Of a DNA stretch of 64,000 nt, positions 64-53,378 are shown in pieces. The position numbers and the translations under genes are program-made. The DNA lies in the NCBI GenBank assembly GCA_964247055.1, contig OZ176054.1:9486001-9550000 (forward strand). Direction: 5' to 3'. Below the pieces are notes generated by a model. It was not told the DNA's origin. It did no database searches and worked only from the letters and a program-made list of their open reading frames with translations. How positions within the stretch are numbered: the first letter of the stretch is position 1; every line of letters starts with the position of its first letter. This stretch comes from Paragordius varius. Lineage: Eukaryota; Animalia; Nematomorpha.

Positions 64-12493
<12,430 letters not shown>

Positions 12494-12505
12494 ATCAAAA
12501 AACGA
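12494..12505. promoter_or_regulatory. 12-bp gap between divergent start codons of DHX38 and SART3 (putative shared or overlapping bidirectional promoter)
   Basis: CAT at 12491-12493 and ATG at 12506-12508 are separated by ATCAAAAAACGA. The minus strand over 12503-12513 reads TTCATTCATTC, an Inr-like TCATTC repeat. Confidence 0.6.
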
Positions 12506-15500
12506 ATGAATGAATTACAATTATTTAAAATGCAAAACCACGACCAAAAACTTCAAGAAGAAATAACTGAAATGTTGGAAACTGAGGGAGAAACAGAACA
12601 AAGAATAAACGATTATATTAAAATAATTGAGAGTAATCCGTTCGATTATAATGCTTATATTTATTTGACAAAAGTATTAAATAGCTCTATTTTAAGATTT
12701 ATCGAGAAAATGGACATTTGGATGAATTAAGAATGACTAGAGAAAGATTTAGTTTTATATATGCATTACCAATAACCTTTTGGATAGATTGGATTAAAGT
12801 TTTGTAAAAATAAAATTTAGGATGAAATGCGTATTGCAGAATCGGAAATTACCGACGAATTACAATCGATAGATAAAGACCAATCTATTCCAAATTCGGT
12901 TTTATTATCTATATTTTTTGGTTCATATATGTATATTGCTGTGAATAAAATATTGGACTTAAATAATTAATGCTATCTATTTAGAAATTATATTATAACA
13001 AATTAATCGTCAACTGAAAACATTTTCCATATATCTTTCGTAACTTCAAATAAAAGTTAAATTTTAATTTTAAAGTAATTTGGATTTAACCATTGGACGG
13101 TATGAATTACCGACAATGTTGACCGATAATAGCTCCGAATGTTGTTTTTTCGGTATATTAAATGTTTGTTGTGATGTTATTTTAATGCACCTTTCTATTT
13201 ATTTTAATTGCATATTCTTCAGAACTCGTCACCTAGTAAATTGTATGGTTTGTGTATCGGAGTGTTATATTCCAACCGCAACAATTTAATTTTTTCAATC
13301 TTTTATACCTGCCAATAAGCAGTCCGATCATGAATGCAGTAATCATAAGCAGTTATTTACTATCGCAAATATATTTTGTGATGTTAAGCGTTTAAATTAA
13401 ATTGTGTCACATTGCTATAATGAATTAATAACATTACTAAAAGTTATGCACTTTTGCATATTTAATTAATATACCAATATATTAAATTTAATCACGTTAT
13501 AAACATATTTGTGAAAAATTTTGACTCCTTATTTTTAAAAATTCTTAGTGACAATCAGATTGCACTTATAACCGATGAAAACCAATCCCAGTTACAAAAT
13601 GGATATTTTAAATTTGAGTAAATAAAATACTAATTAAAATATAATAAATGTCCGTCATCCGCTTTTTACAACATAAATTTTGGTAATGATGAATGCCCCA
13701 GACCAAGAATAATAATTGCATTTTTATGCCGTCAGATTTAGAATCTCGAAACTGCGTATTTTTTCTTTTTTGACTGTCACTCCTAAACAGGTAATTATAT
13801 CAAAGCCTTTACAAGTCTAGATAAAATATACGTCATTACCCTTTATATGAAAAAAGGGAAAAACTAGACTCTACAAAAGGGATCAGATAGCTGCCAAAAT
13901 TCGTATTTTATACCTTAACAATTAACTCGATGTTTTAGGTTACTTCCATTCTAAATCTTTTTGATCGAGCTATCCATGATTTCATGAGCATTGATGTTTG
14001 GCTCGATTATGTTCAATACGTTATTGGTCAAATGGGCCCTCTAGGGTTATCACGCGTTAGAGATACGTTTGAAAATGCTATTGCTAATTGTGGCTTGCAT
14101 GTCACGCAAGGCAGTATAGTATGGGAAGCTTACCGAGAATTTGAAATGGCTCTCATTGCTTCTTACGAGAACCGGTTGGAGTCGATACGTGAAGAGTGTA
14201 ACTTTTTTTTCTTTTTTAGGAAATCATTATTTGGCTTTAAAGTTTAATTTAGTGTAAGATAATTAGTTAGTTCCCTAAAATTATTAGTATTTTGTTTTAA
14301 AGCATATCTATACAGTAATTAGCGAAGGACCAAAAATATAATGCTTATACTTTTTTCGCACCACAGCATAATACATAATTTTGTTAATATGTGGTAAGTT
14401 ATGATAATTTTGCAAAAATTTGAGTTTTAAATGTTTAAGATTTGGCTTTCTGCTAATAAAGATTTAGTCGTCTATTTTAGAGTATGTTGGTATAAAACAT
14501 TTAATGTTTATAAAGGTTAGTTAAGTTTTAATTGGAGTATATTCCCATATCTAATATTACTACTTTTTTTCTTAACACAAATCCATGATATTGTCGAGGC
14601 ATTTAGTGACATTAGAAGAACCCGCTCTAGACACAAATGAAACTGAGCTTGCTTTAAAACCATTGAAGGATGAATGCATAAATCAATACATGCGAGTGTT
14701 TTCACTTTTTAAACGGCAACTATCTGTCCCGCTACAAAGTATGGAAGAAACTGTCAAAGAATTTCGAGATTGGATTCAAATCATTGATCATCGACACAAA
14801 AGTCTTGGGATAAATTGTTCCGGGTAAACAATTGCTCTTTTTTTTAAAAAAAAGGTAGTTTGGTTTTATTTACTACTAAATGTAGTAGATTATTTACTTT
14901 TAGAGGTTATTGGATTATGTGGATCATATTAAATATAATTACAGTTAAATGTTTAAAATTTTATTGCAAAATTTTATATATCATTGCAATAAATTATATA
15001 TATATATATGATAACCATTCAATATGTAACTCATCCTACTTTTTTAAGATTAAACTGGTCAAATTTTCTTTTAATGCATACTAAAGACTAATTTTTTTAA
15101 AACCAACTCCCCCAATTCGTATATCAAACAATCTATAAAATTATTATTTAATTCATATTCTGTTTTATTTTTTTGTAACTTAATAATTTTACATTTAGTG
15201 GTGACACCAAAATCTTGACGTTCTTGGACCCAAAAGAAATTGACATTATTGAAAAACAATTATATCCATCAGCCTTTTCCAAACTTACCGAAATTAGCCC
15301 TTTTGAAACAGCCATTGAGAATGCACATCAAGCTATTATTGCACATCAAAATTCTGAAAAGTTGCATTTAGAATATAGAATTTCAATAAATGAATAAATA
15401 TTTTTTTAAAGAAATTTAAATAATTTGTTTATGACGCCCAATATTAATAATCCTACATTTGTATATTATAGCAATCTTTCCAGAGATGAGATGAAAGGTA

Positions 15501-18500
15501 TTTTATTCTTTCTATCAATTATCAATCAATAAATCGTATTTGTTAGTCTTTCATGGTTAATATTATGATTTTATGTTATTTCAAGGCATATAAATGGCTA
15601 AGCCATTCTTTAATTTTTTAAAAAGTATTATTCAAAAATAAATGCGAATCCAAAAATTTGTGTGATATAAAAAAACGGGGTTTCTCATTATTTTAAATAG
15701 CCAAAAAAGTCTTTTTTGGAACATCGAATTGAATTATAATGTTATATCAAATTTAATTCAATTAATCACAATTAATACTATTTAACTAAATTTTAGTATT
15801 CTCGTGTGCGATCCCCACTATTTTTCATTAAAAGGGGCTCTACATCTTACGAATAATTTTTTATTTAATTTATGATTTTATTATTCAGAACATAAAGACA
15901 TGTTAAATAACTTGAGATTCAATGAAAGGCAATGTTACGTGGCATATATTAATCACGAAATGCAAAAATGTTTTGGTTCGTCTCAATCCGGTGGTCAAGA
16001 TACAAAATCTCGAAAAAGTTTTTTCTTTATATTTTTTGTACATACATAATAAGTTAAGGAATAAATTTATCGATATAAACTTGGCTTGTTTTATTATGTT
16101 GTCAATGGGTTTCGAAGATATTTGTAGCTGCTTAGTTAATTGAAATATTTATAAGCTATTGCTAATCTATCGTTATCAATTATTCTTATTATGATCCTAT
16201 ATTGAACTAAATTTATTATTGCGTTATAATCGATCATTTAATTTCCCATATAGTTTGCATTTTTCCAGGACATTTATCCAATATTAAGAGCAGAAAAACC
16301 AAATTAAATACAATAGCCTAGTTATGCGTGATTGTCTAAAACTTTCATTAATTAGCTCTATATTTTACTTTTTTTCCTATTTTATATTTTCATTTTGATT
16401 TTAATGACAGGCGTAAAATAAATCCATTAATTTTTTTGTTTTTCATATTTTTTTAACAAGCCGTAAATAGTTCATCATTTAATACAACACCTTCACGCAT
16501 AATTTGCCTGTATGAACGGGCATTATGTGAAATGTCCAATGATCCAGAACTATGGATTGCTTATGCCCGACTTTATATTGACAAATTACGAGATATCACT
16601 AGGGCTCAATCTATTTTAGCCCGAGCAGTTCGATGTTTTATTGGTAAAGCCGTCGTGGCTTATGGTTACACCATCCCAATCGATAACACTTCTTTTGCAG
16701 AGGCACCAATAGATATGGGTGGGTAAATATTTTTCATTTGAAAAAGATTTAAATTTTGTATTTGTAAGAAGTATATTATCTTTGCTATCGGAATATTTAG
16801 ATATTATAATGTTATGTTTATATAATATTTAAACATTTTAGGTTTTTAGTACTTGTGTCATATGCGGCGGTAAATGTTTTTCGTTTTTAATCTTTTTTTG
16901 TAAATGAAATCGCAGTAGATCTCTTCTTTCCCTTAGATACTCCCAATATAATGAGTTTTTTTAAAAAGGCGCTATTTAACTGAAATGAACTCACTTTTTT
17001 GATTGAAGTATTTGGTTTTTTAGTCATATTCGTCCAAACTTGAGTTAACGTTTGTGTGATTTTATAAGCCAACTCTAAAAAAAATCTATGATCACTTTTT
17101 AAATATTCATATAATTCTATCATAAAATTGTATATCATCGAAAAAATTGTGGATATTAATTGAAATTACTCAAAAATATTTAATTTTGTTTTCCACAAAA
17201 AGAGTGCGGGTGCAATATTGAACCATATAATTTTTTTCACACAATGGGAATCATTATACGGTGGGTCCACTCTGTACTTTTTTATAATTTTTATTTTTGC
17301 TTTAGAAAATTTTAATAAAAAATCGCATTTTTTACACAAAATAAATTATATTTGTTTAGGCCAAAACGATATAAAACAATTCGATAAAAAAGATGTACTA
17401 AATTCTATTGCAAAACTATGGATTGGCTTGTTGGAATGTTTTGAGAGAATTCATTTGGAAACTACAACTCATGAAGATAATGGATCTCAAACACAACATA
17501 ACATTGAAATGGATTCTGTGTAATGATCAAAATAAATTTTTAATATAAAAGTTTTAAATACAATGTAATCCATTTATTTTTAGTTGTTAATCTATATTTA
17601 CTATGATATATAATTGTAAAAACAAAATATAAAAAGTTAATGGCATATTATTAAAGATAAAACCATATTTCACATCATTTTTTTTTACATAATCTATCGT
17701 TGCGACGGGTAAATATATAAGTTGGTAACTTACTAAATAATTTATTTCACTTTTATAATTTTTAAAATTACCCGAACAAAATCAAGCTTAAAAATAAATG
17801 TTTTTTTTGGAAATAATATATTGTTTTGGCTTTTATCACTTAACTTTTTTTACATAACTTTATATATAAATTAATAGCAACAGTGAATGGGGGGAATATA
17901 ATGATCAACAAAATCCATCCAGTTTTAGTAAAGATTCAATCCAAAGTATAATAAAATATTTTGTGTTTTTATAAGTAAAATTTTTTATGGTCTTATAATC
18001 CAAATATATATTTTAAATTTTATAATGGATAATAATAACTTTTGAATATTTAGATTTAACAATCTTTTTTGTAGTTTAAAAGTGCTTGATATTTTTTCTT
18101 ATCAAAACGCTTTTCACATAATACTGTTAATGTTTTGTCAGTCATAATATCAAATATCGCTTATATTAATTTCTTTCAATACATTTTTTTAATCAATCAG
18201 TTTATAATTATTAAAATTAATTCCTTAATAGATATTCATTTACCACACAAAATACCCAATGATGAGTTAAATAATGAGAAAAAAACTCATTTGTCTAAAG
18301 GGAGCGCATTACTTCAATCTATCAAAAAATTCAAAATTCCTGATCTTATTGATGCGACCGATATATACAATTGGGTAATATATTTGATGCTATATTTTTA
18401 TTTTATTTTTTTAATCAATTAATACGGTACAGTTTATATTTGATAAAAATTTAAAATTGATAAAATAACTATAAAAATAAAGATTGGCGCACATACTACT

Positions 18501-21500: not shown

Positions 21501-24500
21501 TGATAATTCTTTTACCAGTGATTGGAATTTAAATTGGAATCATGCATTTTTTTAGTTGTTGTGAATAGGGTTGTGCTGACCAAGTCATGACCATGGTCTT
21601 TCACTTTTTTTATTGCTAGTAAAAAAAATTTTTGAAAGAGAGATAGTAAGATATTATTGTTTTTTATATATTTTTTATTTAAATATTCTCAAATATATAT
21701 ATTTAAATATGTTTATTTAACAATATATTAAAAATGTTAAGCATGCATCCTTATAACTATCCAGTTATTTTGAATACATTCGAGACTTGTGCAAAATATG
21801 CAATTACATATATGTGAACCAATAAAATGAAAAAACATCTTATATTTGGATATTAATTGATTGATGAAAGATAGTGTAAAACAAACTAGGTAATTTTTTT
21901 TGAAAAATCCAGCATTGAAAGCTATGTATTTTATGATTTAGAAGACCACAAACTTGTGGCGAAATACAATTGAAAACAAAATTTATTTGATTAATATTTG
22001 TAAATAATAAATATCAAAAAAATGTATTATACAAGCTTTTAAGAAAAAAACATCCCAATATTAGTGGGACGCAAGTTTCAGCATTATTTTTACAATATCC
22101 AATATCGCATGATATTTACTTAAGTAAAAAGTAGTCATGACCATGATCTGACTGGTTCTGACCGGACTCTATTGAAAAAGCAGTCAAATGCACAACCCTA
22201 GTGGTGAAATTAACTGTTTTAAAATTATTTAGTGTTTGAATTTTAATTAATATAGAAAAATGTGATTTATATAAATGGCATATTTATACCATTTGGAAAT
22301 AATTAGGCTCTCCAAATTTTTTAAATATGGAAGCCAGAATCATTTGACCAAATTTTTTTGCAAAATATTCACTTAATTGACCATTTTTGAAACATTTTTT
22401 TCTGAAAATATATTTGTAACCTAAACCATGGACATGGAACCGCAAAAACGATTCCGAATCCAATCATTTAATTTACATATTCTAATTAATTATCAAAAAT
22501 TTTATTACGTTTTATCCAATTATTTTTGAACTAAGAATGAATCTGTGGAGTCAAAATCTAAGAAACGAAAGGGAGAAACAAACCGTTTTGAACCAACTAG
22601 AGATACAAATGGTAATTTTTGTTGTTCTATTTATTCATTTAGTTTAAAAAATTTTGTTTTTAATACAAACACACCTTTCTTACACCACGTGTTACTTTTT
22701 GTTATTCAAATTAATCATTTTTATATTTTATATGCATTTGCGCATATCTTTATCAGTATCTAAACGACCATCGAAGAAAGAAACATCCCGAGAATTCGAT
22801 CAAAACAAGATAGATAATGATGGTATTTTTAAAACACTTTTTACAATTATTTTAAGATTAAATTTTTATAATAAGGTTTATTAATTTTTAATGAATTTAA
22901 TCATTATGTTATAGGTTTCATTATACCCGCCATTCCCAAATCAATATCCAATGAATCCAAAGTATATAATTATTTACTTTTTTGCTTTTATAACAAATAA
23001 GGATTCTTTAATTTAATAAAATAATACTTTTGCCTTACGTTTCATTTTTGATTCATTAATTGTTTTACAAAAAAAATACGTATAAAATAAATGATATTTT
23101 CATTTTCTAGCAAAATTAATAAAAATATTTAGTTTTCCACCACCAGAAACATTAATCGAGAAAACGAAATGGAATATATGGAACAAGCTCCACAACCGTC
23201 CTCTTTCTCCTTGTATAACAGTGGACAAAATGTTGATTTTTCTTTAGTGCCTGAACGCACGCTTTTTCTTAGCAATTTATCATTTAAGGCAACAGAAAAG
23301 GATATTGGTGATTTGTTTAGTCAAGTAATATCAAAAAATTTTCGTTAGAATTTAGAATTTTATTCCAACTTTTTTTTTGAAAACAACTATTAGCGCATTA
23401 GAAATTTTTGCATTTAACAATTTTGACTTTATTTTCAGATTTTAAATTATTTAATAAAAATATTAAATGGACTTTTGAGTTGTATTTAAGTAGGGATCTT
23501 TAAAACATACAAATCACATATAATAATTATAATATACGTGCTTTAATAGATATCAAATAAAAGAAAACAGAAAATGAAAGCAAAAAATTATTGCTTTGAA
23601 ATCTATTAATTATTATTATTTTTTTATTACTATATTATGCAAAAATTGACTTTGAAGTTTATCTTTCAACTACTTTATTGGTTAGCAAATGTATTACAAT
23701 TTTTGTGTTGAATCAATACATTATAGTGTTTTTTACATATTTTGATTTTATGTATTTTTTAGTCAAATAACATTTTTTTAACCAAGCGCAACATTTTTTA
23801 AGCAAACGCAACATTGTTCCGTTTGGTTGTATGTTGCTCTTGACTGAAAAATGGTATAGTTAAATAATAAAATAATATTTAGTTTGGGGAGATTTCCCAC
23901 ATAAGTCTTGTTAAAACGCGTAAAACTCAACATTCACGTGGTTATGCTTATCTGCTGTTCAATAATGCACAAAGTGCACAAAAAGCATTGGCTAATGACA
24001 GGATTTTACTGTTGGAAAGACCTGTTTTCATATCTGAATATGGGATTAAAGGACATGCACAAACGTATATTATTTAGTTTACTTTTTTTATTAAGTAAAA
24101 TTAAACAAAATTTAATTATAACATTATATATGCTTTTATAAATTACATATTTCTGAAATATTTTTTTCATCATATTTGGTTGATAAAATATCCAAAAGCA
24201 ACAACAATATTATGAATCATACTTTTTAAATATAAACACTTTTATCAACATTATAAGGAATTTATATGTTAGATCTAAAACACGTATATTGCATGGTATT
24301 TATTATGTTATTTGTTTTGAGTAACTATTATATTTAAATTTTTTTATATTTTTTATTCATGCAGACTCAAAACTACTGATAGTGGTGTAAAACGAGATTT
24401 TATTAAAGAAAGCATTCAAAAACCATACGTCTCCAAATCTAAACTACGTGTAACTTCACAAAATGCTGACAATTTATCACAAGAGGTAGATGGTAAGGAT

Positions 24501-29070: not shown

Positions 29071-32000
29071 AGTTACAACTGTTGTTACGCGCGCGCGTTC
29101 GACCACTACACAAACGAAAAATTCTAAATTCTTATTTATTTTATATTATATCTATTTATCTTCAAAGTTTATTCTATCTTTTATCACTTATCCTATACTT
29201 TAAATTTTGTTATAACATACCTATTCCCATTTTTGTTTTTGGACGTAGGACTTACCGTTGGCCTTTTCCTATAATTTGCCTATTAATATTCTCTTAAATA
29301 TATAGATTGTATTCTTGGATAAGTATTGTAACATTATTTATTTTATTTTTTACTATGACACAAAAATAACCCTTGATTTATATTGTTTTATACATAAATT
29401 TTGCTTTAAATTTTTTTATTGCGAAATATAATTTCCGTTTTTACCTATAGCCTAGGTTTTTTTTAACATCTATCAATTTGTCATAATTAGTTCGACACTT
29501 CAATTTTATTATTTTTATTTTGTTTGTTTAAAGCTGTCAAATGAATATTGATGTGTATAGTAATAACCGGTCAGGCCTGACCAGCCGCGGTTTTGGTGTT
29601 GTGGCCAATAATACAAATAGAATGCAAAGGAATACGGGATGCCTGTATTTTGCTAGTTTAAATGTTGGTTCATTAAAAAGTAAGTTAAATGATATTGTGA
29701 GAATAATGAAAGTTAAACATATTGATATTTTGGCATTACAAGAGACTCGTTACCGCGGAAACGGAGCAAGGACTTTGGAAGAGAATTATCGACTATATTA
29801 CTCAGGTGAAAGTGGCGGACGAAATGGAGTGGCAATTATCATTAATCCCAAATTGTCCAATCAGGTTAAAGAAGTAAGACGCTATAGAATCATGAATTTA
29901 GATATTTTGGTAGGTAACGAGGTCATAACGGTATTTAGTATATATGCCCCGCAAATAGGTTTACCGAAATAAGAAAAGGAGCAATTTTACGAGACTCTAG
30001 ATGAAAAATAGTCGCTCTCCCTCAGCTCAGAGTCAAGTTTTTATGTGGGGATTTTAATGGTCATCTTGGTTCAAAAAGGGAATCTTTTGAAATATGGCAC
30101 GGGGGACATTCTTATGGAGAAAGAAACGAGGAAGGAATTAATTTGCTCAGATTTGCACAATCTCACAATTTGGCGATAGCGAACACGTTTTTCGAAAAAA
30201 GAGATTCTAGTAACTTTTAAGAGCGGCATAAACAAATCTCAAATAGATTTTATACTTGTTCCAAGAGACTTATTGAAGCTTGTAATAGATTGTAAGGTCG
30301 TGCCAAACTTAGAGGTTAGTTCGCAACATAATTTACTTATTTGTAAATTTTTCGTGAAAGAAAAGTCTAAACAAAGTGGTTCTTATTCAAAGAGATTAAA
30401 AAGTATTAAGTGGGAGAAATTATCCGAAAAAAGGCAGGCTTTTATAAAAGAAATACGGTTATCCGAGGATGGTGGGTTAAATGGTGATTGGGATAAAGTA
30501 AGTCAGTTAATCAAAAAGGCAGGAACTCTAGTTTGTGGATTAAAAGGCGGAAAATATCAAGTATACAGAGAGGCTTGGCTTTACGATGAAAGAATAATAT
30601 TGATGTCACGAGAAAAAGGTAAGGCTTTTGACAAATGGAGACATACAAGGAATGATGATGATAGAGATAAGTATAAAAGTTTAAATAAGGAATTGAAAAA
30701 ATTAGTCGGCCAGGTTAAGAAAGAAAAAATGAATTTATTTTATGATGAGTTAATTAGTAAGCAAGGTTTAAACAAAGTGTATAAAGTTGCGCAGCAAAGG
30801 AAAGGATGGATTTGCCAGGTTATGCGACTGCAATAAAAGGAAAAGATGGAAGCTTGCTGTGCGAAAATGTAGCAATATTAAAAAGATGGAAAGAGTACTT
30901 TGTGAGTATAGATGAAGGGGTAGGCGAGATATTTTTGCCAAATACAGTTGAAGCTACTGATAGACAAATAGAAGCAATTACACAAAAGGAAGTAGAATCT
31001 AATTTGTTAGAAATGCCAAACAACAAAGCTGTAGGATCGGACGACATAAATATAAATTGTTGGAAAGTGCTTGGAAATTCTGGATTAAATTTTTTGGAGC
31101 GTGTATTTAATAAAGTTGTTTCAACGTATGAAATCCCGGTTGAATGGAAGGAAAGTTTAACTGTGCCTTTATTTAAAGGAAAAGGTGATATAAATGAATG
31201 TAGTAACTATAGAGGGATAAAACTTATGTCTCACACTATGAAATTGTTTGAAAAAATAATTGAAAAGCGAATCAGGAAAATGATATCTATAAAAGGAAAT
31301 CAATTTGGTTTCATGCCAGGAAAGTCAACAGTAGATCCTATACATGCGGTTAGGAGGTTGATTGAAAAACACATTGAAAAAAAGAAAGAATTACACGGGG
31401 TTTTGATTGATATAGAGAAGGCGTTTGACAGGATTCCTAGAGAAACTATTTGGTGGAGTCTCCGTCGTAAAAAGGTGCCAGAAAGTTATATTAAGTTGTT
31501 ACAAATAATGTACGAATCACACACCTCCAGGATTAAAACTCCACAAGGTTTATCAGAGCCCTTTTCAATAAAGCATGGAGTCTACCAAGGCTCATCACTC
31601 AGCCCCTTATTGTTTATAATTTGTATGGACGAGGTAGCCAAGGTTGTTAATGTGAGTTCAGGATGGTACTTAATGTATGCAGATGACATAATCATCTTGT
31701 CTGATTCATTAATTGAGTTAAAGCGAACGGTAAACAGATGGGTTGTTATGCTGGATCAATATGGTCTGAAAGTAAACAAAGCAAAAACCGAACTTATTAC
31801 TTTTGGGGGTCCACAACATGAAATGGTAGTTGATGATAGTTGGGTTCTGAAGGGTAAAGAAAGTTGCAAATATCTGGGAGCTATGTTAAGTGCAGATGGT
31901 TCGTTAACTGACGATATTAATTTAAGAATAAAGAGCAGCTGGGTAAATTTGAAGAAAATTTCGAGCGTATTATGCGATCGAAATATTGATGTTAGAGTGA

Positions 32001-32470
32001 AAGGTAAGATTTACAGTTCAGTTGTCCAGCCCTCAATGATGTATAATTCACAGACAAGAGGGGTCAAAAAATCCGAAGAAAGACAATTTAACGTGACTGA
32101 AATGAAAATGCTCAGAATGATGTGTGGGGTAACTAGAAAGGACAGAATCGATAATATATTTATTCGTGGGAGCACAGATATTAAACCAATAGTGGAAAGA
32201 ATGTCAAAAAATAGCCTACGTTGGTTCGGGCACATTGAAAGGAGAGATTCTAATTATATTGCAAAAATAATAGATGGTTATATAGTTGAGGGAAAACGAG
32301 GACGTGGGCGACCTAAAACAAAATGGATAGATACAGTAAAAAGAGAGCTAGCAGAATACGAGCTTAATGCAGAGGACGCCATAGATAGAGTTTTATGGCG
32401 AGACAGGTTGTATAACATGACCGCTCTCACGAGTGAAAAAATGCAATGTAATAATAATAATATTGGTTAG
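29071..32470 (+). mobile_element. RTE-clade non-LTR retrotransposon, near full length; endonuclease part disrupted, RT ORF open
   Basis: APE endonuclease motifs (ASLNVGSL, LALQETR, SIYAPQ) with a stop at 29970 and frameshifts. The 554-aa ORF 30806-32470 has NYRGIKLMSHTMK, QFGFMPGKST, DIEKAFD, GVYQGSSLSPLLF, YADD, RWFGHIERR and GRGRPKTKW. It ends in an (AAT)n run. The 5' boundary is approximate. Confidence 0.92.
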
Positions 32471-36700: not shown

Positions 36701-39700
36701 ATTTACGGCCGTTCTTTGCCACGGATGTGGTGAACTATATCCACAACCGTTTTAATTACTGAGAGTGATTCATCTTTTATACGCGAAACCAAGTTGCTGA
36801 TGAATAAAGCAGTTAAAGAATATTTTGCAAATTATATTTGTTTATCAAAAGGGGAATAAATCCTTTGTTTATTTCAATTATAGAGGGACACTCATCTGTG
36901 CACAAAACCAATTTTTTTATAGATATGCCATTATTATCGAAAAAAATTCTAATTATTTCTAGGAAATTACTTCTTTTCGTGGTATCATTGGTAAAAATAA
37001 ATACTCGTTGATTATGTTGTAGTTGTGAAATCTCACGAGCGCAAATTGAGATGTCTTTCCATATTGTATTTTTTATATTATGTGGTCCTTACATATAAGG
37101 CAGGTAACAACATTATTTAAAAACGACAAAAAAATTTTCTTCCAATTCTTTATTAAAGGAGCGATTTTATCGGATAATTTACGTTTTTTGGCATTAGATG
37201 TCATCCTTTTAATTTATGTTTAAATATTATGTAATTTTTTTCAAAAAAATAGGAATATAATTTAATATGTTATAAAAAAACTGGACGAAATTTCATGATG
37301 TTGATTTGAAAACTATTTTATGGAAATGAGTATTAGAAAATGATGTATAGCAATGAAAATAATATGCAAGTTTGGGTGAAAGGCTTGCTTTACAAAAAAG
37401 GAATGCAATAAAAATTTTAAAATAGTAAAGAAAATAAAATACAGAAACAACTTGTGCCAAAATTTTAAAATCCTTTTAATTTATGAAAATTTTTCTACAT
37501 TTCAAATTGGGTAAAAAATAAAAATTACCAGTTATTGAAGAAAATAAATTAATATTAAAATACGCGAAAATCCGCTTATGTGTATTTTGAAAATTCATCA
37601 AAAAAATAACTTATGTATCTATATGGTCATAGGGCAATTTTAAAGTACTCTTAGGGCCGCATGCGGCCCGCGGGCCGCGGTTTGAGTATCACTGATCTAA
37701 ATCAAATACTCCACATGGAAACCTAGGTCGTTCATATACAGTTTCACCCGTTATCAGCACCTTTGTTTTGCTTATATCTTCATTCCACCCTTATCTAAGT
37801 GTGATTTCCATGTGTTGTACTTTTGATTTAATTCTTCCATTGATGTTATGGTGAGGACAATGCGTCCGCATAGATAAGTTCCCATGGTGGGCCTTGTTTT
37901 ATATCTTTCGTTAGGTAACCATTATTAAAATGAAAAGTAGAGGGCTTAGGATGGAGCCTTGATGAAGATCAGATTCGTTTGGAACAAAAGTTGTGTTGCC
38001 TAGTGTTAATCTGACGCAGTTTGTTGTTTTATAGCACAACATTTCTATTGATTTAATTATCCAATCATCTACGTTGTTGGATCGTAGTGTGGATGTGATT
38101 AACTTCCTGGGGATTCAATCAAAGGCCCTTTGTAAATCAATAAAAACATGACAAAGTTTTATATTTTTCGCTAAATAATTCTCTTGCAATCTTCTCAAAA
38201 TGAAGATTGCATCAATTGTGCTACTGTTTGGTTTATAGGCATATTTTGATTCCTGTATACTAATGACTGATCTTAGTTTTGATCCAATAATGGATTCAAA
38301 AATTTTTAACGGGTGTTCCAACAACTTTAGTGGTCTGAAGGAGGAACAAACGAGTATGTTTCCTTTGTTTTTATAAATGGGTATGATGGTGCTTTTTGAC
38401 CAATCATTGCGATTTGTTGACAAGATTTGATTAAATATATGAGTTACATACGGAATGCATTGGGGTAAAGCTTTAATCATATCGGAGCTGAGTTCAGATA
38501 AACCAGTTGCTTTGTTATTCATCTTGGCCAAGGCATCTCTTACATCGTATGTTGTTATCAATGGTCGGGAACTAATCGCTGGTGGTTGGTTTATTGTTTC
38601 AAAATCATGTTTTTGTGCGAATTGTTCTTGGTAATATGTGGTCCAGACATTGCTTATGTCTCTCTAAGTATGCTAGATGTTGGTATTTATCAATATAGGA
38701 AATTTGTTTAATGTCCTTTTTATAATTGTTAACTGAATTAATTGTTCGATCTTAAGATTTTTCATGTCTTGTTCTAGTTTTTTAGCTAAATCCAAAGCTT
38801 TTTTGTTGGCTGAAACATTGATGGCTTGTTTGTTTTGATATATGATTCCAAGTCTCTTTTATTGTTTGTTTCCATCTTTTGTAGTTATTGCGTTTAATTT
38901 TGATTAAAGGTTTTATGGATTCTGACCACCACATATTTGATTGTTGTTTTCTGTATATTTTCTTTCTGCCACAAAAATTAAGCACATTTGTGATAATGCT
39001 GTTTTTAAAATTATCCCAAGCTTGTTCAGATGTTTTGTGGTTGAGGCTGAGCGTTGCATTGACAGTTTCTGAGAGTTGAAGTTTAAGATCAGGAAGGTGT
39101 AGTTTTTCTAAGTTTGTTTTGGAATTCTGGTTACTATGGTAATAGGATTTGTATATTGTTATTATTGCAATCAATTTATGTTGTGAATCAGTGAGATATG
39201 TTTTAGAATCTATGATGAATTTTCTATCTTGTATAGGTGTTAAAATGTAGTCTACCATAGAGTTTTGATTACCACTTGTATAAGTTATTAATTTCTTTGC
39301 TGGTTTCGTTAGAGGGTATTGCCGATAGTAAGTCTAAGAGATGCGCAGTTGTATCACCTTATTTGTTACGGTTGCCAAAAGCGTTTCCTCCATGTATTCT
39401 CATATAGTCTTGACCATTAGTGCCAACGTGGGAATTAAAATCTTCACCTATAAAATTTTGTCATTTGGAGGTATTGCATGGGAAATGTCTTATAGTTGGT
39501 TCCAAAAGGTTTGTTTGGTTGCTTCGCTTAATCCAAACTGAGGGGCATAGATAGAAAGTATGTCAAGAATTTGTTTTTAAAGCCGATACGTATTTGGATA
39601 ATTCTTTCGTTGTGTCTGTTTATTTATATTATATTATCACAATATTAATTTTTAATAGTTATAGCCACATGTTGACCTTTTATTTAACCTTTGTAGAATT

Positions 39701-41041
39701 GTATAGTTGTCAATATTCAGCTTTCCCTCAGATTTACATCTTGTTTCCTGGAGGCAACAGATGTCAATGTTTTTCTCTTTTATTTGGTCCATAGCTAAGT
39801 TTCATCTACCGACTAGTGTCGAGATATTCCAAGTGCCGATCTTAAGTGGTTTTACCATATTGTTGGCTGTTTTTTGATGTTTGTGGTTTTTTAGGAGCGC
39901 ATTAATATTTTTATCATGTAAATTAATATTTATAAAAATCAACTCTAAACGAAATATTTTTTTATAAACGAAATTTTTTTAAACATTACATTTGCATTTG
40001 CATATAGGTTTTAAATATTGAAAATTATAAAACAACTTTGCATAACTTGTTTTAATATATATCTTTTTACTAATTGATAGTTACCAATATTTTGGCTCAA
40101 AATATGGAGTATATCGTTCTTTTCCCATCCGACCACTTGAAGCCAAAATTAAGGGATCTACTCAGGAATACGATCCTCGTCTCCGCCCTTGGTATATAGC
40201 CGCTATCACAAAACCTAAAAATATCATTATAATATTTGATGCAAGTTCCACCATGGAAGCAAGGTATAAATTTTGATTTTTGCCCTTATTTATGGTGTTT
40301 TCAACAAATTTAACTTTACTGTATTTTTTCACACTTTATTTTGGGGTAGGAAAAATCATGTATTTTAAAACATTACATACGTATCAAGCGTTATAAAAAA
40401 AATTTCAATTTTTTAGGACTATCCTATTCAGATACATATCACTATCTCTTCCAAAAATTAATTTCTTTATGAATTTAGAACCACGATTGTATTACTTTTT
40501 AGGGCATTTTATTTTCAAAAAAATTATTTTACCATTATAAATTCTACATTTTAATTTTGTAGTATAAACCGTGCACGGAGTGTAACACTATCAATCCTAA
40601 ACACGCTGACGAATTTGGATTACCTCTCCATCATAATCTCCAGATCCCCCTACTATGATTTGAAAGGGAATGTTCATGAAACGCACCCATATGTTTTGGG
40701 TTGTGATAATCAAACAACTCTTTTACCAGCTAATCCCAGTTTTACTAGCAAACTTTATTTCTTGCTCGAAAAAATTAAACCGGATGGTGGTTCCAATCAT
40801 TCGTAAATTTTTTAATGCATTTTAATTAATTATATTTGTTTGAAGTTTTTAATTTTATATTATTCAAAAACCTTGTTTATCCTATAAATATGCATATGCA
40901 GGGCTGCTTTTTCTCTTGCCTTTACCATGTTGGAAAATGTGAACAATAGTTTATGCCATAATCTTATTTTATTTGTTACTGATGGAATAACATTAGATGG
41001 GTAAGCAAAATTTGATATTGTTAGTTATTTTATCCAACCTC

Positions 41042-51219: not shown

Positions 51220-53378
51220 CTAGCTGACCCTGTCACTTTGCTGTGACGTAGTCTCACCGATAATTATTCTTAAATTTGCAATAAATAGAGGTAATGGAAA
51301 TAAAATTAAATAAAAAAATTTTTAATTATTCTTTTACGGGTTTTTGCATAGGCTCAAATATTGTTTACTCGAAATTGACCATATTTAAACTGTCCCTTAT
51401 TAAAGTTAATAAACTATCATTGGATTTATTTTAAGATTTTTGTTTAACGAAATTATGGTTAAAAGTATTATTTTGAAATAATGTTTAAACAGCTGGGACC
51501 AAGGGATATAAAAAGTAAATTATTTGGTCCCTTTTTAAAGGAAAAAATGGTATTACATAAATTCCCCAGAAATGCGTTTAACTGAACTCGTATGGTTTGG
51601 GTTTTTTGAAAATTAGCTCCAAAACCACGCCATTTTTGCAGGGCGTCTCAGTTTTAGACCGGTAAACCACCACCCATAGAGCTATATGGAAAAAGCGCTG
51701 AGTTAAATACCAGGGCAAATATTTGGAATCATCTTTGATACCATGGTCTCATGGGTTATTCGAAAAAATACTTCAACATTAAATAATTATATGATGGCGT
51801 ATTTTTAGAGCATAAAGACCCCAACGGCTAATAAAAAAACGCCTGACCTTTTTATTTAGTTACGGGTAATATTTCAAGCTTTTAATGAGATCATATGGCT
51901 TCATAAATTTTCTGTAAATTAGCTCCAAAACAACGCAATTTCTATAGAGTGGCGCATTCGGCGGGTAGTTTCTAACCCAGGGGCAGGTGTAAAAAAGCGC
52001 TGGGCAAAATTTTTGCCTTTATATGGGGAATATCTGGAATTATCATGGATTCCATATGTTTCTATTAAACTCATAGGTTTTCTGAAATTCTCCAAAGGCA
52101 TGCTGTATCGATATGGGGATGCAGTTTTACGCGGGTGGCCCCCTAACCAGGGGCGAAACCAAAGAACGCTCGATTAAAATTATTGCCTTAATTCGGATAA
52201 TACCTGGAATCATGATTGATTCCATATGCTCTAGTGGGATTATCGAAAATTGCCTCGAAACCAAAAAACTATTCTATGGTGGCGCATTTTTTTGGTCAAG
52301 GGCCTAATTAAGGAGTAATTTAATAAAACCGCTCTACCTAAATTTTTGCCTTTTTACGTATAATATTTCAAGCCCTTATTGAACTCATATGGCCTGAGTT
52401 TTTTAAAATTTGCCTCTAAAGTCACGCTGTAATGATATGGTGGCGCAGTTGTTGGCGGGTGGGGCCCCCTACCTAGAGGCCAATATAGAAAAGACGTTTG
52501 ATAAAAAAATTTGCTTTATAGGGGAATACCTGGAATCATCATTCAGTCCATAGTTAATAGTTTTTGGAAGTATGGCTTCAAAACTAAATAATAGTTCAAT
52601 GATAGCGCATTTTTTAGGGCGTAAAGGGCCTAATTAGCCGGTAATTCAAAAAACCGGTTGACTTGTATTTTTGCCTTTTACGGGTAATATTTCAGGCCCT
52701 TAAACTTATATGGCCTGATAAGTTTTCTGAAAATTAACTCCTAAACAACGCAATTTTGATATGGTGGCGCAATTTTAGGCGGGTATACCCAGATGCTGAT
52801 ACAAAAAAAGCGCTTGATTAAAATTTTTGCCTATTTACGGAGAATACCTGGAATTATGATTGATTCCATAGGCTCTCATTAGTTTTTGGAAAAATTGTCT
52901 CAAAATTAAACATTCCTTCTATGGTGGCGCATTTTTCAGGGCGTGAAGGGCCTATTAACAGCTAAAAAACCGTACGACTTTTTGCCTAACGGGGAATACC
53001 TGGAATCCTTTTAAATTTTAACGATCTCATACCTTGGTCGAAAAATAGATTAAAAAAATATTTTTTTTGGTTTTTTTGCAAAAAAGGGCATTTTATGGGG
53101 GGAGCGGGCAAAAGAAGGGCCTAAATTAAAAAAGCGAGCCGACTATGTTCGGCGCAATCGAAAAAAGTAAATAAAAATGATATAAAATCGAATGCAACAT
53201 TTTTTCCGGAAAATCGTCTCAAAGACACGATTTCTGTGTTTTCAAAAAAACCGTTTTTTACACGGAGGGAACTGGGGGCCTAAATCAAAAAAAGGGCGAT
53301 GCTAGGCATTCATAAATGATAATATTTTTCCGGTTTTCCGGGAACAGATCACAAAGTCACAACTTAAAAATATATAGA
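51220..53378 (-). mobile_element. Complete non-autonomous Helitron with internal tandem repeats
   Basis: Minus strand reads A|TCTATATAT.. at the 5' end and GTCACAGCAAAGTGAC hairpin + 8 nt + CTAG|T at the 3' end, i.e. an insertion between A and T without a TSD. Confidence 0.85.

Follow-up and report, generated by a model that had tools for sequence, protein, structure and literature searches.

Start codons 12 bp apart in the diverging DHX38 and SART3 genes of a hairworm: a candidate minimal bidirectional start region

How can two diverging genes be transcribed when their start codons are only 12 bp apart? This question is raised by a 64,000-nt stretch of the genome of the hairworm Paragordius varius (contig OZ176054.1, positions 9,486,001 to 9,550,000; hereafter the window, with a G+C content of 22-35% in 2-kb bins), in which the genes for the spliceosomal proteins PRP16/DHX38 (a DEAH-box helicase; minus strand) and SART3 (a U4/U6 recycling factor related to Prp24; plus strand) point away from each other. 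Our tentative answer, in which transcription starts are placed from the DNA only, is that they form a real head-to-head pair that may share one minimal bidirectional start region and produce messages with very short, overlapping leaders.

The two start codons

The triplet CAT at 12491-12493 of the plus strand is the minus-strand ATG of DHX38, and the first in-frame ATG of SART3 occupies 12506-12508 on the plus strand, leaving a spacer, ATCAAAAAACGA, of 12 bp between them (12494-12505). SART3 has two further in-frame ATGs, at 12530 and 12572, with which the distance between the start codons becomes 36 or 78 bp, and an out-of-frame plus-strand ATG stands at 12510. Each start codon is the earliest possible in its own exon. 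The original prediction had drawn attention to this geometry, and all of its sequence statements proved correct. The DHX38 Met at 12493 is the only one ahead of the conserved N-terminal motif, the three SART3 ATGs and their gaps are as claimed, the minus strand over the SART3 ATG reads TTCATTCATTC (12514-12504), and the space available with any of the three Met codons is too small for two ordinary leaders plus a promoter.

The identity of the minus-strand gene rests on several exons, each searched singly rather than as part of a joined model. The segment 6951-7265 matches residues 393-435 of human PRP16 (E 1.2e-13). The DHX38-specific region that precedes the helicase core is present; 253 library proteins match at E<=0.001, and the long ones that were read are DHX38 orthologues. 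The Walker A motif GETGSGKT and the DEAH motif are readable in minus-strand open reading frames (ORFs) at 3407-3685 and 1821-1958, and Pfam matches to these short exons stay under the cut-off. The C-terminal exons of the gene fall to the left of the window.

We then examined the N-terminus, on which the position of the start codon depends. Full N-termini were available for seven orthologues, and DHX38 exon 1 can be aligned with them from end to end (34-44% identity; M1, L9, G11, G20, L21, S37, G40, L41, D42 and L44 invariant); the motif L-E/P-G...GGL-I/V...S-L-L/F-GLDKLA falls among the first 60 residues. When a profile built from these orthologous N-termini was run against the 7981 six-frame pieces of 264 kb, it matched only the exon 1 frame (E 3.5e-9; next best 0.54), and this match begins at residue 4. 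Exon 1 alone has no detectable similarity to solved structures. Upstream, an in-frame TAA (12517-12515) stands eight codons before the ATG, so that the frame is open for seven codons ahead of the Met, and the minus strand contains no AG from 12494 to 12550; together, these two features leave no way for a coding exon to be joined upstream of the Met. Position 12493 is thus well supported as the start of DHX38, and as secure as sequence alone allows.

On the plus strand, the segment 13984-14247 matches human SART3 (E 1.4e-16) as well as HAT-repeat families (HAT_PRP39_N, 31.5 bits, above the cut-off). Further downstream, the ORF at 23169-23348 gives an RRM_1 match that stays under the cut-off (E 0.048), only the first 21 model positions being in the exon, with the RRM starting at ~23260. 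SART3 coding exon 1 (12506-12673) is followed by a GT-AG intron of only 23 nt (12674-12696), whose removal restores the frame into exon 2 (12697-12798); a second GT-AG intron, of 22 nt (12799-12820), is placed by frame reading only. Exon 2 aligns to human SART3 directly after YDYNCH, the first HAT motif, and exon 1 carries its counterpart, FDYNAY, which makes exon 1 the start of the HAT domain. The only PDB matches of exon 2 are SART3 chains (E 0.037-0.076), while exon 1 alone shows no detectable similarity to solved structures. A word search with the 74-residue SART3 frame, aimed at close relatives, gave no match. Homology gives no choice among the Met codons at 12506, 12530 and 12572. An in-frame TGA (12485-12487) stands seven codons before the ATG at 12506, and the plus strand lacks AG throughout 12470-12551.

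The matches to the two human proteins therefore uphold the gene identities given in the original prediction, and the upstream in-frame stops, with no AG between stop and ATG, uphold both exons as the first coding ones. Each gene has its own locus as its sole match in the 110.6-Mb genome, and each is single-copy and intact. As a consequence, both must be expressed from this locus.

The same tight layout is found elsewhere in this genome. In the TRMT10/PRMT5 pair, one CATG is common to both starts, or the starts lie 16 nt apart if PRMT5 uses a later Met; the start codons of PNPT1 and its diverging partner are 9 bp apart. A crude survey of the open frames in 264 kb of this chromosome, covering diverging ATG-started frames that were 65 codons or longer and no more than 60 bp apart, returned DHX38/SART3 as the sole clean pair, and across the same 264 kb there was no general excess of small gaps between diverging open frames. 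The habit of tight pairing is frequent but not universal in this genome. The original prediction had read the locus as a possibly co-regulated pair of splicing factors; this idea loses its footing, as the same layout joins genes that are functionally unrelated. We believe that the shared splicing role of DHX38 and SART3 is probably a coincidence, and the tight head-to-head layout looks like a habit of the genome and not a splicing-specific device. Nor did the neighbourhood recur in the one other animal genome readable at the locus, where the upstream neighbour of DHX38 is an adenylate cyclase. The nearest named relatives are no more than a monogenean fragment and a mermithid nematode protein.

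Where transcription may begin

With start codons 12 bp apart, each promoter must lie in a coding exon or intron of the other gene and, as far as can be judged from the letters, each message must begin inside or right beside the first codons of its partner. Candidate initiators, matching the consensus TCAKTY or YYANWYY, are present on both strands, 14 nt from each ATG. The DHX38 strand carries the initiator-like TTCATTCATTC (12504-12514), which is the complement of ATGAATGAA on the SART3 strand; its A residues, at 12507 and 12511, precede the DHX38 ATG by 14 and 18 nt, respectively. On the plus strand, 12490-12497 holds both CCATATC, which fits the initiator consensus YYANWYY and has its A at 12492, over the DHX38 start codon and 14 nt upstream of the SART3 ATG, and a TCA with its A at 12497, 9 nt upstream of the same ATG. 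The pyrimidine-pyrimidine-A motifs found 14 nt upstream of both ATGs sit over the partner's start codon, the complementary pairs being TCAT/ATGA and CCAT/ATGG.

The SART3 side also constrains the leader. Two out-of-frame upstream ATGs (ATGATG, 12484-12489, plus strand) open a 9-codon frame that ends in TGA at 12511-12513, over the SART3 ATG. Splicing could not remove these ATGs, located at -19 and -22, and a clean SART3 leader would consequently be unspliced and at most 18 nt long.

In our model, transcription of either gene would begin at a pyrimidine-pyrimidine-A motif that resembles an initiator, 9-18 nt ahead of the gene's own ATG. The DHX38 motif would be TCATTC (A at 12507 or 12511), and that of SART3 would be CCATATC or ATCA (A at 12492 or 12497). 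Both leaders would be very short, the overlap between the mRNAs would amount to ~10-20 bp, and the remainder of each promoter would be contained in the first exon and intron of the partner. As ATGA reads TCAT on the opposite strand, the start codon of SART3 would at the same time be the core of the DHX38 initiator, and the CCAT that covers the DHX38 start codon would play this part for SART3.

A positional signal at gene starts is consistent with this model. In a set of 17 starts selected for the identity of their genes, the most enriched trinucleotide-by-position cell was TCA with the A at -9 to -11 (6/17 against a background of 4.9%, nominal p 1e-4), and it was present at five of the seven head-to-head starts versus one of the ten others. 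TCA at -10 was absent from the starts of a myosin heavy chain/imidazolonepropionase-like region and of two genes resembling G-protein-coupled receptors (GPCRs). We consider this signal suggestive only.

Several observations weigh against the model. The TCA signal was picked out post hoc, and its family-wise p went from 0.002 with 10 starts to 0.085 with 17. Genome-wide, the arrangement TCAAWTTT-N3-4-ATG occurs 2413 times versus 2692 times at N13-14, which is no excess. The consensus YYANWYY is loose, and in a genome of 75% A+T the CCATATC match is near chance level. Scanning ribosomes of animals read ATGs poorly when these are less than ~15 nt from the cap. Finally, the ATG-free stretches found upstream of DHX38, PNPT1 and PRMT5 fit longer leaders better, so that these stretches and the initiator-like motifs are two signals in the DNA pulling in different directions.

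Taking the ATG-free stretches at face value leads to the account that we rank second, possible but clearly less probable than short overlapping leaders, which we rank first. In this account, transcription of DHX38 would begin within SART3, at a depth of 60-220 nt that falls in exon 1, the 23-nt intron or exon 2, and would give an ordinary leader kept free of upstream ATGs; SART3 would start near its own ATG, or further back in exon 1 or intron 1 of DHX38, in which case the short upstream frame would be tolerated, with re-initiation at 12530. On the DHX38 strand, the 223 nt upstream of the start codon (12494-12716), which are antisense to exon 1 of SART3, to its 23-nt intron and to the beginning of its exon 2, are indeed without an ATG, a run found in 1.8% of coding-like windows and 4% of shuffles preserving the dinucleotides of the segment itself. 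The two other tight pairs that were rechecked resemble DHX38/SART3 in being one-sided, with a long ATG-free stretch ahead of one gene (182 nt for PNPT1, P 0.036; 310 nt for PRMT5, P 0.0085) and close upstream ATGs ahead of the other (at -11 and -32). The sole His codon of SART3 exon 1 is CAC, in a genome that prefers CAT 3 to 1. Yet the pattern comes from three pairs in which the better side was picked afterwards, the combined p of ~0.005 being simple arithmetic, and N-termini rich in Lys, Glu and Asn are C-poor and would have fewer CAT in any case. Moreover, the initiator-like motifs are far closer to the ATGs than the starts that a long leader would need. The His codon just mentioned belongs to a wider run, as codons 11-13 of SART3 (12536-12547; Asn, His, Asp) all end in C (AAC CAC GAC) whereas the genome prefers T-ending codons by ~3 to 1; the CAC here avoids an ATG on the DHX38 strand.

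We consider two further explanations improbable. In one, the coding sequence of SART3 begins in an exon further upstream that is spliced in after 12506, for example at the AG at 12552-12553; an intron of SART3 would then enclose DHX38 exon 1, and the distance of 12 bp would lose its meaning. The acidic N-terminal extension of human SART3, of ~90 residues, is missing from our SART3 model, and this explanation would also suit both the lack of structural similarity of exon 1 and the undecided choice of Met. In contrast, the absence of AG from 12470-12551, a frame that stays open for 22 codons before the third Met and holds three in-frame ATGs, and the position of FDYNAY and exon 2, which shows the HAT domain opening with exon 1, all speak for exon 1 as the first. 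No convincing plus-strand exon was found among the ORFs of 9000-12490, and the recurrence of the tight geometry in other gene pairs argues against a one-off annotation error. The other explanation, to which we give the smallest chance, is spliced-leader trans-splicing, in which the primary transcripts would start far inside the partner gene and a common leader would be joined near each ATG. For DHX38 this would be possible, as its strand has an AG in a pyrimidine-rich setting (cttcttgaag) 57 nt ahead of the ATG, and at another locus the start of the exosome RNase PH gene (L024:1427) has TTTCAG one base before the ATG, a possible acceptor right at the start codon. SART3 is different: no AG separates its upstream ATGs (12484, 12487) from 12506, none is present in 12511-12530, and with the AG-free interval 12470-12551 trans-splicing is unable to provide a clean leader. 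Likewise, the short-side genes of the TRMT10/PRMT5 and PNPT1 pairs are without an AG that would give one. The Rfam SL1 model (RF00198) had no match in the genome, in a shallow search with this nematode model only that scored 50 of ~38,000 candidates; no Rfam family matched within 10700-16000; and we found no paper linking hairworms to trans-splicing, which is an absence of report only. Judging from the sequence, trans-splicing for SART3 is unlikely.

Comparison with known systems

At human bidirectional promoters, the two genes begin to be transcribed within 1 kb of each other, their leaders are ordinary and their start codons are hundreds of bases apart. DHX38/SART3 resembles the animal bidirectional promoters in having two diverging protein-coding genes, often housekeeping ones, around one short start region that holds no further gene. 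As a candidate pair identified by its start codons, it departs from them in that these are 12 bp apart. We regard the layout as an extreme variant of the bidirectional promoter.

Very short leaders arising from an initiator near the ATG are known from mammalian genes with TISU (translation initiator of short 5′ untranslated region) elements and from the initiator-driven genes of Trichomonas and Giardia. The features in common with these are an initiator-like motif 9-18 nt upstream of the ATG, predicted leaders of ~10-18 nt and the housekeeping nature of the genes. However, the start-codon contexts of DHX38 (TGATATGGCATC) and SART3 (ACGAATGAATGA) both differ from the TISU consensus SAASATGGCGGC, of which DHX38 has only ATGGC. 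Unlike the tiny, intron-poor genomes of Trichomonas and Giardia, the genome in question is that of an animal, with 110 Mb and multi-kb introns.

Outrons are removed by spliced-leader trans-splicing in nematodes, flatworms and tunicates. In these systems, too, neighbouring start codons may be very close and the transcription start is hidden. The hairworm pair differs from them, as SART3 has no acceptor where one would be needed and the shallow search returned no SL1-like RNA gene. A further likeness is with the other tight pairs of the same genome, which also have tiny introns near their 5′ ends, and which differ from DHX38/SART3 in that their functions are unrelated to splicing.

If the starts are truly so close, two essential genes would function with almost no leader and with promoters written inside each other's coding sequence, even though the genome has ample room elsewhere and contains introns several kb long. 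The locus would then be a test bed for the minimal DNA needed by a bidirectional animal promoter, for the behaviour of ribosomes on leaders of ~10-18 nt, and for the way in which coding and promoter constraints share the same bases. A wider and rather doubtful extension is that many housekeeping genes of this animal have protist-like promoters, with an initiator ~10-18 nt upstream of the ATG and near-leaderless mRNAs; the ATGR of one gene would be the YCAT initiator of its partner, and the start codons would be locked 9-16 bp apart. If true, this ATGR/YCAT coupling would leave a promoter no place but the coding exon of its partner and the tiny introns at the 5′ end of that partner.

Gene structure and other features of the region

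DHX38 coding exon 1 (12321-12493, minus strand) ends at a GT donor (12320-12319) in phase 2, and the frame reaches exon 2 only with a phase-2 donor; a second in-phase donor is possible at 12311, and the exon end is not at 12340. Intron 1 (12214-12320) is ~107 nt long and extremely AT-rich, with GT...AG boundaries that restore the frame. Exon 2 (12038-12213) resembles the ETPxxxGGV region of the orthologues and is followed by a 1.9-kb intron (10117-12037), placed by frame reading, with exon 3 running from 10116 downward. Tandem 21-nt repeats are found inside DHX38 introns at 7416-7647 and 4011-4163; their frames read NLNCSRV and, antisense, TLEQFKF.

A 63-nt piece of DHX38 exon 1 (12355-12417) recurs on the minus strand of another chromosome (G000:C7:2368912-2368975; L002:1501-1564), with 58/63 bases identical, or 94% over the aligned part. 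This copy sits in an open frame with unrelated flanks, and is possibly a stray fragment of the exon or else an exon encoding a motif common to both loci.

The DHX38/SART3 junction itself contains no meaningful repeats or palindrome. The 17-mer TCAAAAAACGAATGAAT, which is common to another locus, was rejected as a chance match, as it has three exact copies in the genome, not above control; the copies elsewhere fall in an intron and in a coding repeat. Small-gap pairs in the 264 kb were rejected as well. The pair at 52101/52113 is a degenerate tandem repeat of ~190-300 bp (51500-52700) that mimics head-to-head ORFs and has TATCGATA in its spacer, and the remaining pairs were not gene-like.

Downstream of the last SART3 exon examined, which holds the RRM start, retrotransposon-like frames occupy 29541-32470. 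They comprise a 143-residue endonuclease-like ORF and a 554-residue ORF that is reverse-transcriptase-like, and similar frames recur at 38400-39800. To the left of the window, the myosin heavy chain gene, with many exons, lies at window -171362 to -156000 (L005-L007), adjoined by the imidazolonepropionase-like exons, and the two GPCR-like genes, each of a single exon, are at ~-122955 and -37534. At the RNase PH locus (L024:1378-1430; G000:C6, near 9043400), a signal-peptide-like frame diverges from the RNase PH gene 48 bp away. Finally, the palindrome TATCGATA is also present at L013:5397-5410 (window ~-94603 to -94590), 6-13 nt upstream of the ATG of a frame resembling a type II membrane protein; we take it to match the DRE (DNA replication-related element) motif of insect promoters.

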